In this document: positions 20,781 through 33,875 of the stretch, piece by piece
Layout: the number at the start of each line of letters is the position of its first letter
Numbering within the stretch: position 1 is the first letter of the stretch
Assembly: GCF_048593235.1 (NCBI RefSeq)
Contig: NC_133620.1
Coordinates: forward strand, 442,523,261 to 442,587,260
Length of the DNA: 64,000 bases
Reading direction: 5' to 3'
Source: Sminthopsis crassicaudata
Lineage: Eukaryota
Program-made: the position numbers and the translations under genes
The notes under the pieces: generated by a model
What the model saw: the letters and a program-made list of their open reading frames with translations, nothing else
What the model was told of the DNA's origin: nothing
Database searches by the model: none

Positions 20781-22793
20781 GTAAGTGCTGGGCCTCCCCC
20801 TCTCACCTGGCTGCCTCTTGAAAACCTGGTGTCATTGGTCTGGAGGGGATGTCTCTTTAAATTCCAATAATTTGACTCGTAAGCCAAAGCTCAGGATGGT
20901 TTCATATAGGAGATAGGACAAAATCATTCTTTTTGGCTGAGAACAGGGATGGTTTTAAATAGAAAAGCATAGAGACAGGTGGATAGAAAGGACCCCAGAA
21001 GAACTTCCTCAAAATGGGAGAGCATGAGGACTCTATCCATGCTTTCAATTCTGATTCACTCTCCAAAACAAAGACACTGGGACCAGCACCTTCATGGTTT
21101 TTCTGTTCCCATTCCATGTTGCCCTATGCCTCTATTTCCCCACAAAAGGTTGGGGAAAGGAAGGCCTGTCATCTTCCACAAATTTAAGGTTACATCTGTC
21201 CTGGATTCAGGCTACTTGCAATGTGGGTCACCTCTCACCATAACTTTGTAGGGAAGGTGGGGGGAGGAACTGAGTTAGAGAGGTGTAAAATACATTAAGT
21301 TATACTCCTTCCTACTTCTGTTGCTAAAAACAAAGAGTAGGGATAAACTGGTTCACCTAGAGGGTGGGGACAGGCTTCTGGCTGGATTCTCTTACAGATC
21401 TGCCATTTGTGCCTTTTGCTGCTTCCTCCTACTCCCAAGAGTAATGCTGCCCCACTAATCACCTCTCAATTCCTTTGTACTTTGGCAATGGTCTCAGGGC
21501 TGGAGAGAAAGTGGAAGAGCTGGGACCATCGCTGAGATTTGGGGAAGTGGAATTGGAGGAAGAGTGGCAAGATGAAGAGTTCCCCCGGTGAGAGAATGGG
21601 GAAAGAAAGTGGAGTTAGAATGTATGGGAGCAAAGATGGGGAGATGGAAGGGACAAAGTCAAGATGGGAAGAGCATGGCTGATAGGATCCCATTCCTCAT
21701 TTCTTCCTGGTCCCTTCATCCAATTAATTCCTCACATCCCAGACTGCTCCCTGAGGAGATCAATTCCTCTGAAGATCCAGAGGACAATGGAGAGGGCACC
21801 CAGATAGGTAAGGTCAGACAAATCGTGGTTGGTACTGTGGGAAGGGAGTGCCTCTCTTGTCCTCGTGTCCCTTCTGTCAGTTCCACCCTCTTCCCCTCCC
21901 CCTTGCTTTTTCCAGACTCTTTAATCTAGCTTCCTTTTCCCTCTCTTCAGTTTTCTTCTCCCTGTCACCCCAGGTCCCTTAAGCACATTAGCACTATGTG
22001 GTAGGCGTCATATGCGGAAGCGCCTTTCAGCCCCAGAGCTCCAGCTGAGCTTGGGCAAGGATGTAGGAGATAAAGAAGTCTCTCCCAGCCACTCCACACC
22101 TTCTTCACCACATGATAGCACTGACCTAGATGTGGATGATTTGGAAACACCCTCAGACTCCAGCGGGCACGAATTTGAGTGGGAAGGTAGGTACTTGAAG
22201 TTAAGAACTAAGCTAGAATAACAACTGGGAGAATGAATGGAGTGGGAGAGAAAAACAAGGCTAATAAATTGGGGCATAGCTGGTGGAGCTGAGAAATAAT
22301 CACTGGAAGTTAACAGAATTGACCTAAGATTAAATGAGACTAAGGATGGGGTTCATGAACTGGCCAACTGAAATGGGCAATTTCAGTGAAGTAATTGGTT
22401 CTCATTGATGGTCTTCAAGAAGAGGCTGGATGACCCCTTGTCAGGAATGTTCTAGAGGGGATTTTTTGGGTGGTAAAAAGTTGGACTAGATGGCCTCTAG
22501 GGTTCCTTGAACCCTTTTTTGAATTCTGTGAATTAAAAGACTAGTTAGTGAGGGGCTTGTCTGGCAGATTCATTGTCAGAGACAAGAAACATTGTTCAAT
22601 AAAAATTGTACCATATATGAAGTCAGAAGACCTCAATTTGAGGTTTTCTCTCTGGGTCTCAAAGGAAAATTAGGAGACCAAACTAGATGATCTTTAAGGT
22701 CTCTAATACTAAATGTTTTGATCCTTATGAAAAGGACCAAACATGGATAAAAATGGGAATGGGGCTAATAATGGGTAAAGCCAACAGAACCAG

Positions 22794-22837
<44 letters not shown>

Positions 22838-25612
22838 TGTGTGCATGCATTTTTATAATTCAAATGTATTGCACTTATCTGTACAATATGCACACACATA
22901 TACATACATAAATATATGTATATTTGTAAGACCTTTATATTCAAGGGGCCATAATAGTAGTTAGTGGACACGTTAAAATTAGGTAACTGAGCTGGAAATG
23001 ACTTCATTTGCTCCCTAAATGGAGCAAAGTCATCAATTGTCCCCACTGTGCGCTCAACTCTAGATATATTCAGAAAGAGTTGGGGAATATGGATTGAAAT
23101 GGGACAATAGGGAGATGAATGAGAATAAAACAAGTGGTCAGGTCATTGTGCTTCTGTTACACTCAAGAGTAATGAGGAATGCATTCATACAATCATTCCT
23201 GTCTCTTTTAGATGAGCTTCCCCAAACAGAGGGCCTGGGGGCAAGTGAAGCAGCTGAAAGACTGGGCCAGGGTTGTGTGTGGGATATGGCTGGGGAAGAT
23301 GGCCATCGTGTGAAGGTGTTCCGAACAGGACATCAGGAGCTTCGAGTAGATATGACAATCATTGAACCCTATAAGAAGGTCCTGTCTCATGGAGGTAACA
23401 GATGACAAAAGGATAAATATAGGAGCTGGGTTCTTTATAATTAATAATATTTAAGCTGAGAACCATCAGTTCCCTCTATCATTCTAATTTACTCAATGCT
23501 CTGTCCCTTTCCCACTTGGTCTGCTCTCAAGCTACTTCTCTCAGACTTCACTAATTCTCTTTTCCTTCCTGTCTCTAATCCTATTCTCCCCAGGTTACCA
23601 TGGTGATGGCCTCAATGCTGTTATCCTTTTTGCTTCCTGCTACTTACCTAGAAGCAGCATCCCTAACTACAGTTATGTCATGGAGCACCTCTTTAGGTGA
23701 GAAGGGAAGCCTGAAAAACTGGGAAGAGTGGACTGAGGGAGGGAAAAGGAATCAGGAAGATCTCAACCTAATCAGTAATTAGCTTCACACTACTTTCTCC
23801 TTTTCACTGCCCCTCTCTCTTCACCAGGTACATAGTGGGGACTCTAGAACTACTAGTTGCTGAGAATTACCTGCTTGTCCATCTGAGTGGAGGAACCAGC
23901 CGAGATCAGGTACCTACTCTGAGCTGGATCCGCCAATGTTACCGTACCCTGGACCGACGGTGAGGAACTTGGAAAGATCTTACCCACCCATTCCTTTCTT
24001 CTCTGATCCCATTTCTTTCTCCCCCCAAAATGTCCCTCACGATGCCTCTCTCTTCCCTTTCCTTTTCTCCTCTGCCTTTTCCCAAATATCCCTCCTCTGA
24101 TTTATATTTTCTCTGTCCCTGCTTTTCAGGCACTTGTTTCCCTTTCCTCTCAGCCTTCCATATTTTCTTTCACTAGATGAATCTGTGCCATTGGAGTTCT
24201 TGTATAAGAACTCAAGGGAATTAAAAGAATGCAAGAGGGAGCAGAGGAGACCCAAGAATGAGGAAGAAAGTAGTCAGCTTCAGAGAGAGGAGTCCAGAGA
24301 ATAGCAAACTGAAAAGTTGTGGGACACAAGTTGGAGTGGATTGGGGACAGGAGGCATTTCAGGAATTTCTTTAGTATGAGAAGGGCATGAAAGACAAAAA
24401 CAGAAGTGAGGGCCTCAGGGTGCAGCTGAGAGGATGAAGATTAGGCCCTCAAAGAAATATTCCTAATGGAGGACTAGAAATGAATGTTGATTAAAGAGGG
24501 GATGATTTGGAAGGTCCAGAAGAGACATCCTTCTGGGTTTGGGGCTCAGATCAAGAATGGGATTATTACACACTTTTTGCTTCAGACTCCGAAAAAACCT
24601 TCGAGCTCTGGTGGTTGTGCACGCCACCTGGTATATGAAGGCACTTCTGGTGATGCTCCGGCCTTTTATCAGGTATTTATCTCTAGGGATATGGACTTCT
24701 TGCTTCTTAGATCCATTGCCCCTTCCTCTTTCTCACATTCAGGGTCCGTACTTTCCCTTCACCCTTCTGGCTCTAACCATACTTTCCTGTCAACCACTAG
24801 CAGACCTCCCTTGTCTATAAAGATGTGTGAGAGGTCCTTCTCTAATCTTAAATATATGTGACCTTTCTTCTTTCCTGAGTTCCAAGTTTAGCAGAAAGGT
24901 TCGTTTTCTGGACAGTCTAGGAGAGCTGGCCCAGCTCATCTCCTTGGAACATATCCACATCCCTGATGCCGTTAGACAGTGAGTTCTAGGAGGGACTTCG
25001 AGGGTGGGAAAAAAGAAGGGAATAAACAGGCAGAATCTTGTGGAGAGATAAGAAGTGGAAGTCCTAGTTCTTAACCTTCTGAACTTCACACTTAAAACTT
25101 AATCAGGAGTCCCAGCACTCATGAGAAAGTGACTTGGGAATTCTCTGTATCTGGTGTGTTGGGTACAGGCTGGGTAAAATCCCAGGGAGACAATACAGAA
25201 TGGCCAGAGGAGGATAGGGTTAGAAGAGAAGGCTCTCCTGAAGTGAGCTTGGGAGGATGGGAGGAACAATGTTTATGGGATCTCAGACTGACAACTAGAA
25301 GGGACCTCAAGGTCACGTACTCTCTTCTCTCTCTGTTCAGGAGGGCGCTGAAGTCTAGAGATTTGGGAGAGTGAGCGCAAAGCCCCATTTGAAACCAAAA
25401 TCCAGTACGTGGGGGAGACTGATCATAGTTTTGAGAGGATATGGAGAGCAGCCAAGGAGTAGAGAAAACTAGAAAGGATTCAGACGTTTATTTACCAGAT
25501 TCACTCCTTCATTCAAGTTCTAGTAGGTTAGGATATGATGCTCCGCTCTGTCCTTTCTCTCTCCCTGCAACCTAGGCTGGACAAGGATCTGCATGGCTCC
25601 AGAGGAACCTAA
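20749..25612 (+). CDS. BNIPL: BNIPL (BNIP2-like, BCH/CRAL-TRIO domain), 346 aa; join(20749..20780,21498..21587,21743..21807,21974..22186,23212..23394,23594..23696,23828..23959,24586..24672,24880..24978,25576..25612)
   Basis: Ten exons sum to 1041 nt in one open frame: MGTLEE...[10 protein letters not shown]|LLPEE...|[10 protein letters not shown]...DDLETPSD|...[17 protein letters not shown]|YHGDGLNAV...|[14 protein letters not shown]...|[12 protein letters not shown]|SKF...HIPDAVRQ|[11 protein letters not shown]. Confidence 0.96.
21498..21587 (+). CDS. BNIPL: BNIPL exon 2
   Basis: tctcag|G ... CCCCG|gtgaga; [13 protein letters not shown]. Confidence 0.9.
21743..21807 (+). CDS. BNIPL: BNIPL exon 3
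   Basis: cccag|ACTG ... ATAG|gtaagg; [14 protein letters not shown]. Confidence 0.92.
21974..22186 (+). CDS. BNIPL: BNIPL exon 4
   Basis: ccccag|GTCCC ... GAAG|gtaggt; [10 protein letters not shown]...GHEFEWE. Confidence 0.94.
22797..22844. repeat. (GT)n/(GC) alternating purine-pyrimidine microsatellite
   Basis: Seen directly. Confidence 0.95.
23212..23394 (+). CDS. BNIPL: BNIPL exon 5
   Basis: ttttag|ATGAG ... GGAG|gtaaca; [17 protein letters not shown]. Confidence 0.95.
23594..23696 (+). CDS. BNIPL: BNIPL exon 6
   Basis: ccccag|GTTAC ... TTTAG|gtgaga; [18 protein letters not shown]. Confidence 0.95.
23828..23959 (+). CDS. BNIPL: BNIPL exon 7
   Basis: caccag|GTAC ... CGACG|gtgagg; [19 protein letters not shown]. 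Confidence 0.95.
24586..24672 (+). CDS. BNIPL: BNIPL exon 8
   Basis: cttcag|ACTC ... ATCAG|gtattt; [16 protein letters not shown]. Confidence 0.95.
24880..24978 (+). CDS. BNIPL: BNIPL exon 9 (rare GAG acceptor)
   Basis: tttcctgag|TTCCAAG ... AGACA|gtgagt; [20 protein letters not shown]. Confidence 0.88.
25576..25612 (+). CDS. BNIPL: BNIPL last coding exon
   Basis: cctag|GCTGGACAAG...ACCTAA; [11 protein letters not shown]. Confidence 0.93.
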
Positions 25613-26007
25613 CACATACCTGGATTGGATAACGGGCCCACAAACCAAAGGAAGAGTCTGCCCTCAAGCTCCTGAATTGATTTACTCTCGCTTTTATATA
25701 CTCCCCAATTTATATACTCTCCTTCTCTGTCTCTGTCTCTTTCTCTCTCTTCCCTAACCCATTCATCCATTTTGGATTTTGCTTTCCAACTCTTCCAAGT
25801 GTTCTTACCTAACAAACCCCAAGCAAGCTGGCCACTTTCCCCTTTACGTTTAAGCCTAAGGAATGGGCTGGACAATGGGCAGCTTCGGACTTACTGCCTG
25901 CAGCCGTACTGGGTCCGGGACTCTCCCGGCATAAGGAGCTGCCTCTCAGCCTGGGCCAGTGTCTCTGTTCTTTATCTTCGTCAAATTCAGATATACAGCT
26001 GCAGCTT

Positions 26008-26013
26008 AATAAA
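26008..26013 (+). terminator. BNIPL polyadenylation signal AATAAA
   Basis: First AATAAA after the BNIPL stop, about 400 nt downstream and just before the C1orf56 CpG island. Confidence 0.7.
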
Positions 26014-26019
26014 GTGAGT

Positions 26020-27100
26020 TACGAGAGAGGACTCGGTTTTGTGAAGGAAACCTCCCCGATCCCCAGTGACAGCCAGTCTCTTTGCCCACTGAGCCCACCC
26101 GCACGGCTTGGGGAAAGGGGCGCTCCGGGGCAGGACCAAGCGGAGACAAAGATGCCATAGGTCGGGGCAGGGGTGGGAGTTCTGAGGCTAGGGCCTGCGG
26201 TTTCCACGCAACGCCCCAGGGGAAGCGTCTCGAGCTGCCGGAGGGGCCCATTTCCCCCTCCCCTGGGGCGCTCGCGTCTTTCCCTCAGTTCAAACGAACC
26301 CGGGAGTCCGGAACGAAAAGGGAGGGAGGGAGAAAGAAGCCGAGCCCCTGTCCCTTCCCGACCCTCCCCTCTCTTCGCCTCCAAACCGCCGAGAAACCCG
26401 TCCTCCCATGATCCCCAGCGACCGCGCGCTACTCTGGGCCCTGTGGCTGTTCCTGGGGGCCCGGGCGGTAAAAGCCAGGGTCCTGGTCCAGAGCCAGCCC
26501 GGAGCGGACTGGGCTGGGGGCGGCGAAGGGGACACCGTCACAGCGGGGATCCTGACCAAGGGCTGGCCCAGCATCGTGAAAAGGGATGAAGCTGCTTCGG
26601 TGGGGAGGACGCGAAATCGCGAGGAAGAAGGCAAGCCGGCAGCTCCCGCCGCCGCCAAGCTCCCGGCAGCCTCGACGTCCTCGGTACCCGGGAACTGGGA
26701 AGGGAGGGGCCTGAAGACAGCTCGGGAGTTAGACGGGGAAGAACAGCAGAAGGAAGACCCAGAAAATGACGAGGACTCAGCGCAGGAGACTGAGGACCCG
26801 GACCAAGAAGCTGACCAGATGGAGACGCAGGGGGAACATTACGAAGACCCAGGGCAGTATCAGGGCCAAGCGCAGGAAACGGAGCAAGAGCAGGACCAGG
26901 AACAGAGCGAGATCCAGGACTTAGAGGAGCAAGAGCAACAAAATGAGAGAGAGGGAGAGGAAGGAGGGCGGGGAGAGGCGCGAGAGCAGTTGCAGGGGCC
27001 CGAGGAGCAAAAGCGGGGGGAAGAGGGCCAAAGGCAAAAGGAGAGAGCCGGAGGGGTGGAGCACAGCCAGGACCAAGAGCTGAAGCAGATTCAGGTTCAC
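26020..27100. promoter_or_regulatory. CpG island over the C1orf56 promoter and 5' coding region
   Basis: Abundant CpG, GC boxes (ggggcaggggt, ggggcgc). Confidence 0.8.
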
Positions 27101-28226
27101 GCGGAGGAGCAGCAGCAGCTGAAAGAGCTGGAACAGCAGCAGGAGCAGGAGCTGGAGCAGCAGCAGCAGCAGGAACTGGAGCAGCAGCAACAGCAGCAGC
27201 AGAATCTAGAGCTGCTGCAGCAGCAGCAAGAACTGGAGCACCAGCAAGAGCTGGAACAGCAGCAGCAGCAGCAGAAGCCGGAGCAGCAGCAGGAGTTGGA
27301 GAACCAGCAGGAGCCCGAGCAGCAGCAGCCGGAGCTGCAGCAGCAGCAGCAGGAGTTGGAGCATTGGGAGCCGAAGCAGCTGCGGCAGCAGCAGCAGAAG
27401 CTGAAACACAAGTTGGAAGAGCAGCAGCTGGAACAGCAGCAGCAGCAGCAGAAGCTAAAACAGGAAATGGAACAGCAACAGCTGGAACAGCAGCAGCAGC
27501 AGCAGGAACTGCAGCAGCAGCAGGAACTGCAGCAGCAGCAGGAACTGGAGCAGCAGCAGCAACTGGAACAGCAGCAACTGGAGCAGCAGCAACTGGAACA
27601 GCAGCAGCAGCAGCAGGAGCTGGAGCTGGAGCAGCAGCAGCAGCAGCAGGAGCTGGAACAGCAGCAGCAGCAGGAGCTGGAGCAGCGGCAGCAGCAGGAG
27701 CTGAAACAGGAGCTGGAACAGCAACAGCTGGAACAGCAGCTGCTGGTACAGCAGCAGCAGCAGCAACAGCAAGAGTTGGAGCAGCAGCAGCAACAGCAGG
27801 AGTTGGAGCAGCAGCAGCAGCAGGAGCTGGAGCAGCAGCAACAGGCGCTGCAACAGCAGCAGCAGCAGCAGGAGCTAGAGCAGCAGCAGCAGCAACAGGA
27901 GCTAGAGCAGCAGAAGCAGCAACAAGAGCTGGAGCAGCAGCAGCAGCAACAGCAGCTGGAGCAGCAGCAGCAGCAACAACAGCATCTGGAGCAGCAGCAG
28001 CAGCAACAACAGGAGCTGCAGCTGGAGCTGGAGCAGCAGCAGGAACAGAAGCCTGAGAAGCCGGAGCAGCCACATATTCAAGAGCAGCTGTGGGAGGATC
28101 AGTGGCAGCAACAGATTCAGAAACTGGCACGGGCACAAGCAAAGGAGCAGCAACAGATTCAAGGGCACATGCAGGAGAAGCAGGCTCCTAAGCAGGCAAA
28201 GATGGGTCTGGGCCCTGGGTCCAGGA
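26408..28226 (+). CDS. C1orf56: C1orf56 5' coding segment (signal peptide plus E/Q repeat); the unspliced frame stops at 28334-28336
   Basis: 642-aa ORF from ATG 26408 in ccatga context. Confidence 0.9.
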
Positions 28227-29652
28227 GTAAGAGCTCAGGATTCTTCCCAGCCTGGGTCTCAGTGTGCCTGAACCATCACCAAGGGAACAGGAATTTTCCA
28301 ACACAATTCCAGCTTCTCTGCGAGGGAAGCACCTAGTGATGCTGGCTTGGGGACCATGGCAATGTCATTGCCCCACAGGTATCATGAGCCGAGTTCGGGG
28401 AGGAAAGATTTTAGATTTCACTGGGCGTCTTAGATCTGGGGCCATGAGCCGCCTGGAGACTCAGCGCCAGCCCTGCACTTATGCCCTCTGCCACTGTAAC
28501 CAAGAGAAGAAAGAGTGTCCTTTAGATCACGCCCTTTGCCGTTCCAGTGCCCCTGGTGCCTGCCAGCACCGTGCTGCTTTGGCCCCACTGGGGAGTCCAG
28601 AAGACAATGTCAATGAAACAACATTTTGGAAACAAGTCCGGGAAGGGCTGGAAGAAGTCTGGGTAGGACTCCAGTCCCTGATGACTAAGGAAAAAAGGGT
28701 GAGCCATCAGGAATCAATGCATGAATGAAAGAATGAGGCATTTACTATTAAGCACTTGCTATGTGTAGAGCACTGGGGATTAAGAAGACAGCCCCTGCTC
28801 TAAAGCTCTCTCATCCAATGAATTACCTGATCCATGGTTGTTACTAGTTTTATATCAATACATGATTTATCATCGTGTGCCAATTATTCATTGAAGTCAG
28901 CATTTTTAGATACTAGTTAAAAGATCAAATAGCTCTTGATTGGTCATTGACTAATCTTTGTGTTGGTCATCATAAATCACTGAAATTGTACAAAGCAATC
29001 ATTGTACAGATTCTTAATAAATGGAAACTGATCCATTGATAATTCCTAGATGTGGATGGATCAATGATTTACCAATAAATATTCACCAGTCAGTGGCTGG
29101 CAACTACCTAGAGTAGCTCAAACAGCATTAACTGACTGGGTAATGATTTATTTTGCACTGACCTAGTATTGTTCCTTAATTTGAGGAGGTATGGGGATGA
29201 AGCCAGATAAAAGGAATATACATTTGTCTTGGTCACTGCCTGTTCTTATTTCTCTCCTTTAATGGATCTCTTTACATAATGTCCAGTGAGAGTATAGATT
29301 TATGCATAAAATGAGTAGACTCCCTTGTATTCTAGTAAGGGTGGAAAGTTTCAAAGCTCTGAATTTTCCCATTTAACACATCTTATAAAATAGTTGTGCA
29401 AGGGGGCAGCTAGGTGGCTCAGTGGATAGAGCACCAGTCCTGAAGTCAGGAGGACTTGAATCCAAATCTGGTCTCAGACACTTAACACTTCCTAGCTGTG
29501 TGACCCTGGGCAAGTCACCCATAGTACCATTAGGGAGAACAGTATCAGTAAGATAGTAGGTGAAGGAAAATCGGGGGAAGGGATAATATATAAATGTAAT
29601 TGTAATTTCCCCCTTTCTCTTCTCTACCTAGACAAAGAGAAACCAGAGGTGA
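26408..29652 (+). CDS. C1orf56: C1orf56/MENT orthologue, secreted, with a large Gln/Glu repeat; the frame is interrupted near 28189-28336. Model if spliced: join(26408..28226,28313..28698,29632..29652), 741 aa
   Basis: The signal-peptide N-terminus MIPSDRALLWALWLFLGARAVKA and AAPAAAKLPAA resemble human MVPAAGALLWVLLL and AGPAAAELLAA. The Cys-rich block WGPWQCHC...GRLR.GA.S.L...PCTY..C.C...ECPLD and FWK.VR.GLE..W lies in a different frame. Terminal exon cctag|ACAAAGAGAAACCAGAGGTGA = TKRNQR* (human ...RNQR*). Syntenic position. Confidence 0.92.
27085..28060 (+). repeat. Interrupted coding CAG/CAA repeat array: (GAG CTG GAG (CAR)n) units
   Basis: Seen directly: more than 20 LEQQ units; longest pure Gln run is 8. 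Confidence 0.97.
28313..28698 (+). CDS. C1orf56: C1orf56 conserved Cys-rich C-terminal segment (frame open from 28231)
   Basis: HLVMLAWGPWQCHCPTG...FWKQVREGLEEVW; donor AGG|gtgagc at 28698/28699. The 5' boundary is uncertain. Confidence 0.85.
29401..29520 (+). mobile_element. WSINE1-like SINE in the C1orf56 intron
   Basis: ggggcagctaggtggctcagtggatagagc...ctgggcaagtcac head and core. Confidence 0.85.
29632..29652 (+). CDS. C1orf56: C1orf56 terminal coding exon TKRNQR*
   Basis: Strong polypyrimidine tract and cctag acceptor, phase 0, conserved RNQR-stop. Confidence 0.88.
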   Translation, partial: TKRNQR

Positions 29653-30269
29653 TGGCCACTCCGTGTCCAGCCCCAGAGGAGGAAGGGGTGTCAGCACCCT
29701 AGTCTCTTTCCCCTTCCACTCCCACTGCTAATTTCCCAGATCCTATAGATATCTTTTGTAAAGTAGTAATGGCTGTTTATAATATAAAAACAAAACAAAA
29801 CTGAACAGAACCTTTTGGTCTTTTATCTTATTGAAGGGGTGGTTGGGCCTACAAGAGGCTGGAGAAATCCCTCTTCCCAAGAAAAGAATCAGGAATTTCT
29901 GCTTAGGTTTCTTCCTTGACTTCCCACTCCCAAGTTATATCCTGAAAAATTATTTATTTTCATATGTCAAGGCTAGTCTGAATCTAAGTCAATCTAAAGT
30001 AAAAGAAAGGAAAAGTAGAGAACAGGAAAGTCAAGGAATTGAGGCCTTTCAGAAGTCATCCCTTCCTTTCCCTGCCTTCATTCTGTCTAGCCCTTCCTTC
30101 AGGCAGGGGAAGTGCCTCATTTGGCTAGATCCACCTTTGTTCCTTACCTGTACCCACAAGGTAAGCCAAGAACCTCCTAAATTCCACCCACCCAAATACA
30201 GCATTCCCTCTCCTTCCCCGCCTCCCCATTCTCACAAACCCCTACACAGAAAGATCATTCTGAAACTTT

Positions 30270-32804: not shown

Positions 32805-33875
32805 CTGTGAGGAAAAGGCATCTTAGAGAATGACATTAATTCTTTTTTACCTCAACTCCCCACAGAGATAGTTGTTTTTCCTGGAAAGGAGATGCCCTTC
32901 AGACCCCAAGTCTCCTTAACTATGAAGTCATTTCTTAGACCTCACCTTTCTAGCTATATAGTCTCAGCCCTGTTCTCTTATTCTGTCCTTCTTAAGAATG
33001 AAATGTGAGCAGTTTTCCTAATAATTCTCAGCATTTTAATAACATTTATATTTTTATCTTTTTTTTTTTTTAAACACCAATTTGATTTTCAAAACCATGT
33101 TTTTGAGATAGGCTTTGGAGGCTTCTTTTTCACAACTCTCAGGCAATAGCTTCAGTCTCCAGTAGAAGGGAACAGTTCCTATCTTAGACCCCCATTCTAA
33201 GCCATTTACCATGGAGAGTCCATCTCCAGCCCCCATCTCTCCAGAGCCAATGTGTGTTAGATGAACAAAATTCATTGGTTCTCCAATCATGGTCCTGTCA
33301 ATCCGCCTTCTCTTCTTTTTCTGTTGGGAAAGGGTGTAAAGATTAAGAATAAAGGCTGTCAGCCAGAGCTGAGAAAGAGGGACAAGGAGCTCAGATCCTC
33401 TAGAGAGGAAAGACCCTTTCCTCAATAAGACCATGGGAGAGAGGGGCAGATCAATGTACGAGGGAGAGACCAGAACTAAAAAGGCATTGTATCAGGAAGA
33501 TGGAAGAAAGAGACCTGGGGGGTGGTCTAGAGGGCAGACGCTGAATCAGCTGAAGTCACTCCGTTTGATGAGAGAACAATGTGGGTAGTTGCCTAGCACT
33601 GCCCCCTTTCCTGCCCACCAGGGAATAGGGAGCAGGATGGGAGAAAACTGAGACCATTTTTTAAGCTTTGCCTCATGTACTGTGAGACACTAGCCTGGCA
33701 GACAAGACACAGTGTGCCTGAAAGGACCAGATCCTGCCAGGTGTGAACACCACAAGGTATGCTCCCTCTTGTGTCATGGGGTGGGGGAAGGGGAGGGAGG
33801 AGAGAGGGGAGAGAGACTCACCGGCTGGGGTTTCTCTACCACACAGCATCCCAGTTTGTGCCAAAACTCACTCAT
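32730..33875 (-). CDS. CDC42SE1: CDC42SE1 (SPEC1), 79-aa CRIB protein; complement join(33822..33875,33210..33320,32730..32804)
   Basis: [18 protein letters not shown]|[37 protein letters not shown]|[24 protein letters not shown]; GT-AG junctions, all phase 0. Confidence 0.98.
33210..33320 (-). CDS. CDC42SE1: CDC42SE1 CRIB exon
   Basis: caacag|AAAAAG ... ATG|gtaaat; [14 protein letters not shown]. Confidence 0.97.
33822..33875 (-). CDS. CDC42SE1: CDC42SE1 first coding segment (exon extends as 5'UTR to ~34144)
   Basis: ATG at 33875-33873; donor CCG|gtgagt; acceptor ctcttccag|GAACC at 34144. Confidence 0.95.

Follow-up and report, generated by a model that had tools for sequence, protein, structure and literature searches.

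What has become of MENT/C1orf56 in Sminthopsis crassicaudata, where a long Gln/Glu-rich repeat runs through the middle of the gene? MENT is a little-studied secreted protein that has been implicated in human sperm-zona binding, and a preliminary description of this DNA, made from the letters alone, proposed that the repeat had converted it into a cross-linkable coiled-coil scaffold or adhesive, convergent on involucrin. We analyzed the repeat and its gene within 64,000 nt of contig NC_133620.1 (assembly GCF_048593235.1, positions 442,523,261 to 442,587,260 of the forward strand), hereafter the window, and all coordinates below refer to it. Four matters had to be settled: the identity and structure of the gene, the presence of the repeat in reads and transcripts, its distribution among orthologues, and the properties that its sequence predicts.

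Identity of the gene and its neighbors

The open reading frame at 26408–28336 on the forward strand is exon 1 of MENT/C1orf56 as assembled. Its continuation carries a match to Pfam PF15322 (PMSI1), the MENT/C1orf56 family, at 123.9 bits (E = 1e-35; the cut-off is 29.6 bits); the match covers profile positions 176–311 of 315 and begins at nucleotide 28321, downstream of the repeat array. Pfam searches with the whole exon-1 product and with the N-terminus returned chance-level matches only. A Foldseek search with a structural model of the Cys-rich domain retrieved rat, human and mouse MENT (whole proteins of 344, 341 and 350 aa) with E-values of 6.5e-9 to 1.7e-7.

The gene order at the locus is BNIPL - MENT - CDC42SE1. 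Two exons encoding the BNIP2 domain of BNIPL (22012–22218 and 23094–23402, both +) lie upstream of MENT on the same strand, and a CDC42SE1-type exon with a CRIB match (33057–33434, −) is convergent with it, the CRIB match being slightly below the curated Pfam cut-off (20.4 versus 21.3 bits). Gene tables for the tammar wallaby, sugar glider and wombat give the same order around MENT, followed by MLLT11. The family match and the synteny agree with the name given in the preliminary description: the locus is the marsupial orthologue of MENT/C1orf56. In the relatives, BNIPL ends only about 470 nt ahead of MENT, and this closeness is probably why some RNA contigs reach 0.7–2.4 kb upstream of 26300. 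A word-index search of the protein database found marsupial MENT from wallaby, glider and wombat only, and did not find that of S. crassicaudata.

A corrected gene model

The preliminary description placed the array ahead of the Cys-rich domain in one protein. The order is right, but the frame as assembled breaks before the domain: the Gln frame terminates at 28336 and does not run on into the Cys-rich part, which lies in another frame. The region 26000–30000 contains no N. RNA contigs resolve the break. Contig X12 (depth 276) runs unspliced across 28092–28698, as does X14 from another study, and both carry one additional C behind 28245, reading CCCC where the assembly has a CCC homopolymer (28246–28248, +). 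The apparent frameshift is thus explained by CCC in the assembly versus CCCC in RNA, since the added base brings the two open reading frames into one. The corrected residues, GFFPSLGLSVPEP...EQEFSNT, align with GYFPSLGLPLYEP...ELELSNT of the sugar glider and also with wallaby MENT. Either the assembly is one base short in the homopolymer or the sequenced animal carried a frameshift allele, and the absence of this species' MENT from the protein database may stem from the same one-base deficit. With the deficit allowed for, coding exon 1 is a single open reading frame at 26408–28698 (+), on the combined evidence of the PMSI1 match, the RNA contigs and the orthologue alignment.

Two introns were considered as other ways around the break. 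An 86-nt intron at 28227–28312 was rejected, as the unspliced contig of depth 276 crosses it with the extra C and no corresponding joint was reported. A 152-nt intron at 28227–28378 was ruled out because the Pfam match already starts at 28321.

The only intron in the corrected model is a GT..AG intron at 28699–29631 (+). Loose contig ends occur at 28698 in X3, X10 and X12, and the sequences beyond that point match 29632–29661 exactly, which sets the acceptor AG at 29630–29631. Exon 2 contributes six codons (TKRNQR) and a stop at 29632–29652 (+), with the 3′ UTR following, and IKRNQR is the C-terminal end of wallaby and wombat MENT. Part of the RNA retains the intron (depth of about 36 versus 80 for the spliced form), and the retaining form ends in VSHQESMHE instead of TKRNQR. 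The corrected protein has 770 residues when spliced and 773 when unspliced. Separately, a contig of low depth in X10/X12 is joined to dissimilar sequence immediately before 28348 and could be paralogous or chimeric. In its corrected form the gene model has a single coding exon and a terminal exon of six codons, with a homopolymer deficit in the assembly and no 86-nt intron.

Protein parts on either side of the linker

The N-terminus of MENT (residues 1–23; 26408–26476, +) resembles a signal peptide, with the hydrophobic core ALLWALWLFLGA followed by VKA|R. Alignment shows this leader-like N-terminus to be conserved in marsupials, eutherians and echidna, AlphaFold2 places a helix at residues 6–16, and we regard it from its sequence as a putative secretory leader. 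Alongside the leader, the preliminary description had pointed to a dibasic KR site, and both are there: KR stands at residues 58–59 (26579–26584, +). The pair is also found in wallaby and wombat, is KT in the sugar glider, and is weakly conserved; it is not preceded by Arg at P4. The AAPAAAKL motif follows at residues 78–85 (26639–26662, +) and is aligned in all therians and echidna. An alignment with seven orthologues confirmed both the leader and the motif, in the form (A/G)PAAA(E/K)L near residue 80.

Beyond the linker lies the Cys-rich PMSI1 domain (28321–28698, +), which has a TSR-like start at WGPWQCHC (a WxxW pattern), a NET sequon kept in all four marsupials, and a C-terminal helix. 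The AlphaFold2 model of the domain has a pLDDT of 65. After MENT itself, nearly all Foldseek hits are TSR proteins, at E-values of 0.03 or higher and TM-scores below 0.4. The WxxW pattern and these distant structural neighbors give a weak but consistent suggestion that the domain may be TSR-like. For human C1orf56, a TSP1 profile has been reported (PMC8329450).

Anatomy of the array

The linker of S. crassicaudata MENT opens with an acidic block rich in Glu, Gln and Asp (residues 111–231; 26738–27100, +). It contains 26% E, 22% Q and 8% D, has a net charge of −32, and is common to the four marsupials. It is followed by the ELEQQQQQ array (residues 232–550; 27101–28057, +), which is delimited by Tandem Repeats Finder, by unit parsing and by its words in sequencing runs. 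These 319 residues consist of 56% Q, 21% E and 14% L and have a net charge of −53. To the right, a Q/K-rich flank and the start of the MGLGPGSRSKSSGFFP block (28058–28245, +) are homologous to wallaby and wombat MENT. The array makes up 319 of the 770 residues, and together with the acidic block and flank about 63% of the protein.

At the DNA level, the array is an imperfect CAG/GAG/CTG repeat in which CAG supplies 88% of the Gln codons. Tandem Repeats Finder reports it at 27103–28070 with periods of 24, 27, 51 and 150, 66–69% matches and scores of up to 600, far beyond chance. At the protein level it parses into about 42 units, mostly of 5–10 residues with a mode of 9 (LEQQQQQQE), and holds 179 Gln. 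The stretch at 26740–28190, which spans acidic block, array and right flank, had been given as a Gln/Glu repeat of about 480 codons with more than 20 LEQQ units and no Gln run above 8; we count about 484 codons, 23 LEQQ (15 ELEQQ) and a longest run of exactly 8. Along the open frame, 245 codons are each one mutation away from a stop, and no stop has arisen, which fits either a recent origin or selection.

The array in DNA and RNA reads

Sampled 31-mers of the array (27100–28060 alone) are present at a fraction of 1.00 in each of four genome-sized runs from a first sample, and at 0.91–0.96 in two such runs from a second. Transcriptome-sized runs from at least five studies contain 0.82–1.00 of them. 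The kind of run (DNA or RNA) was guessed for most runs, with the splice joint at 28698 supporting RNA; X10 and X12 look like the same data set filed twice and were counted once. RNA contig X3 is colinear with 26300–27419 and continues for about 100 nt more, X14 covers approximately 27700–28887, and among the RNA contigs over the array no joint that excises it was reported. No single molecule shows the array from end to end, as short-read contigs cannot cross it. The array is real and is transcribed within MENT exon 1, so its proposed presence in raw reads and in mRNA holds, for the first in DNA runs of two samples as well as RNA runs, and for the second by words and non-spanning short-read contigs.

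RNA contigs of other animals have an additional 15 nt after 27255 and GCA after 27336, both in frame in the array. Skips of 57 and 65 nt inside the array (27271–27337) also occur in RNA contigs; they were rejected as introns on account of their non-canonical ends and their source in short-read graph contigs. Such differences in array length may reflect alleles of different length or the collapse of repeats in the graph contigs.

Comparison with MENT orthologues

The Cys domain, used as query in an exhaustive HMMER search, yielded 12 proteins. The marsupials among them are wallaby (735 aa in the model, or 635 aa when counted from the conserved Met), sugar glider (600 and 588 aa) and wombat (596 aa); the others are echidna (232 aa), eutherians (322–360 aa), a caecilian and a catshark. 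For the marsupial comparison we used S. crassicaudata with wallaby XP_072500840, wombat XP_027717576 and sugar glider XP_068946169, and linker length was counted between the AAPAAA and WGPW motifs. By this measure the linker has 562 aa in S. crassicaudata, 431 aa in the tammar wallaby and 390 aa in the wombat, all Q/E-rich, and 256 aa in the sugar glider, where it is rich in E, P, Q and L. The linkers of squirrel, shrew and pangolin have 99–135 aa, are Ser/Thr/Pro-rich and carry little net charge, and that of echidna has 43 aa and is Pro/Ala-rich. The middle of MENT is thus far longer than in these eutherians, as had been supposed.

Both flanks of the array have homologous counterparts in wallaby and wombat MENT; the left one contains ELKQIQV and the right one EQPHIQEQ...QQQIQKLA...MGLGPGSRSKSSGF. 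Between them, each species has its own content. The wallaby has a 12-aa tandem unit, GQPHIQAQKQVK, of which S. crassicaudata MENT holds a single related copy; the wombat has a 14-aa tandem unit, PFQPHQRPPQLEQI; and the sugar glider has polyPro at the corresponding place. The ELEQQQQQ array is absent from the MENT of all three. The long Q/E-rich linkers and the acidic block found throughout these marsupials suggest that the linker is old in the group, and from the sequences compared only the ELEQ array is lineage-specific among the four marsupials sampled. The proposal that this lineage had converted MENT accordingly survives in part: the ELEQ array is unique among the species sampled, but a long Q/E-rich linker is found in four of four marsupials. 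A comparable expansion is already general in the marsupials compared, though not in vertebrates as a whole, given the eutherian and echidna lengths above. Identity in the conserved blocks is 58–79% among marsupials, and S. crassicaudata MENT is the most divergent of the four in most of these comparisons, which probably reflects a place outside the diprotodonts.

Public annotation of these genes is uneven. The wombat protein is labelled ‘transcription factor SPT20 homolog’, a name that its Gln-rich linker presumably prompted. The models of wallaby and glider begin about 100 residues ahead of the conserved leader Met, and an older wallaby-like MetaClust model of 213 aa splices out the entire linker. 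The long marsupial forms appear to be in public annotation and yet undescribed; in the literature searched, C1orf56 and marsupials were mentioned together only in fertilisation reviews.

Coiled-coil and helix predictions

A coiled coil was part of the original proposal and finds no support. About 15% of the array residues are hydrophobic, with a periodicity of 0.19 at 7 and 0.03 at 3.5, and therefore no heptad pattern. Their modal spacing is 9, which would put successive Leu 180 degrees apart, on opposite faces of a helix, and the net charge of the array also speaks against a coiled coil.

In single-sequence mode, AlphaFold2 gives helices at residues 218–288, 323–432, 439–545 and 556–590, broken at Pro, at low confidence over the array (pLDDT 50–74). 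Gln occurs at i+4 of 39 of the 47 hydrophobic residues, compared with a mean of 26.2 (SD 3.2, maximum 36) in 2000 shuffles. Pairs of a hydrophobic residue at i and Gln at i+4 stabilise polyGln helices and designed Gln-based single alpha-helices (PMC6497633, PMC9674830).

The ESM Atlas, searched with the array, returned only low-scoring bacterial low-complexity clusters, and no Pfam family, those of involucrin included, matched the array or 26738–28189 at E ≤ 10.

Explanations for the array

We consider the array most probably a slippage-generated, polyanionic, helix-prone spacer in the fast-turnover linker of marsupial MENT, with a probability of roughly 0.65. MENT has four parts, namely the putative secretory leader, the AAPAAA(K/E)L motif, a low-complexity linker and the TSR-like Cys domain. 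The marsupial linker is long, Gln/Glu-rich, acidic and subject to rapid turnover, and under this reading a different short unit would have been amplified in each lineage through replication slippage or unequal exchange. In S. crassicaudata, a CAG-rich unit of 24–27 nt encoding (E)LEQQQQQ(Q) would have grown to about 320 residues between the homologous flanks; the array is transcribed, with predicted translation in the Gln frame, inside one coding exon. The product may act as an extended polyanionic spacer that keeps the N-terminal part and the Cys domain apart, its helicity favored by the Leu(i)-Gln(i+4) pairs, and constraint on exact length and sequence would be weak. Against a neutral spacer, the lack of any stop at the 245 stop-prone codons could point to selection instead of neutrality.

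That same open frame is among the arguments for an adaptive linker. On this view the linker would be a module under sexual selection in a protein that serves sperm-egg recognition, and its turnover would alter zona-binding reach, charge or avidity and so account for the different array of each lineage. Human C1orf56 has been reported on the sperm surface, with binding to sialyl-Lewis-x and the zona pellucida (PMC8329450), so that sexual selection acting on the linker competes reasonably with relaxed constraint, and the linker is hypervariable in a protein that evolves fast, as the 58–79% identity of its conserved blocks indicates. Relaxed constraint, however, predicts hypervariability equally well. 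Moreover, the human study assigned binding to the whole protein, giving the linker no role and naming the TSP1-like motif only as a possible binding site (PMC8329450). We judge this explanation unlikely.

The scaffold of the preliminary description, in which the array makes MENT a secreted coiled coil or adhesive that transglutaminase can cross-link, at work in seminal plug, sperm coat, skin or pouch and convergent on involucrin, seems to us quite improbable. It draws on the 179 Gln in a protein with a putative secretory leader, on the Gln-rich repeats of involucrin, which are amine acceptors (PMC2192633), and on the sperm association of human MENT (PMC8329450). Opposed to these are the missing involucrin match in Pfam and the cytosolic location of involucrin, the missing heptads with Leu on opposite helix faces, and a net charge of −53 that opposes self-association. 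In addition, the Pro/His/Lys-rich units that other marsupials have at this place argue against a conserved cross-linking role. A combined version, in which the marsupial linker is a helix-forming, Gln-rich polyanion cross-linked or assembled on sperm or in semen and its arrays are sexually selected, would give a zona-binding protein a new structural role, convergent in composition on involucrin; we rate it as highly improbable.

It is more improbable still that the locus is a decaying gene or an assembly artefact, with a real frameshift and an unconstrained repeat in a pseudogene. The assembled frame, which ends at 28336 and differs from that of the Cys domain, and the failure to find this species' MENT in the protein database would fit such a locus, but RNA contigs of two studies restore the frame with the extra C and the restored residues align with orthologues. 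The array is moreover found in DNA from two samples and in many RNA runs, and the gene has an abundant transcript with correct splicing.

Expansions of low-complexity sequence like this one are common, and the marsupial MENT array opens no long-standing question. The value of the finding lies in the comparison across species: in those compared, marsupials have a much longer, Gln/Glu-rich linker in place of the Ser/Thr-rich one of eutherians. With different units amplified independently in each lineage, the gene offers a compact natural series for the origin and tolerance of coding minisatellites in an extracellular protein. For reproductive biologists it is a candidate fast-evolving marsupial gamete protein; human C1orf56 has also been measured in plasma proteomics (PMC12074732).

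Comparison with known systems

S. crassicaudata MENT shares with the other marsupial MENTs the leader, the AAPAAA motif, the acidic block, the Cys domain and two coding exons ending in KRNQR. With eutherian MENT (human Q9BUN1, 341 aa) it has in common the leader, the motif and the Cys domain, at about 40% identity in the domain, whereas the linker of squirrel, shrew and pangolin is short and Ser/Thr/Pro-rich instead of Gln/Glu-rich.

Involucrin is encoded in the epidermal differentiation complex, while MENT sits between BNIPL and CDC42SE1 and has a leader-like N-terminus. The involucrin families have no match to the array, and involucrin itself is cytosolic, its short Gln-rich tandem repeats serving as amine acceptors (PMC2192633). 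The likeness proposed in the preliminary description stands for composition and mode of origin, with Gln-rich short tandem repeats from CAG-rich DNA, a large share in a single exon and variability among lineages (PMC2192633), and fails for family, neighbors and predicted cellular location.

A structural parallel is with Leu-primed polyGln helices, such as the androgen receptor tract and designed helices, which likewise have repeated acceptor(i)-Gln(i+4) pairs; for the array, too, AlphaFold2 predicts helices. The known cases are short and uncharged; in contrast, the array extends over about 320 residues with 21% Glu, irregular units and Pro breaks, and its helicity is a predicted one.
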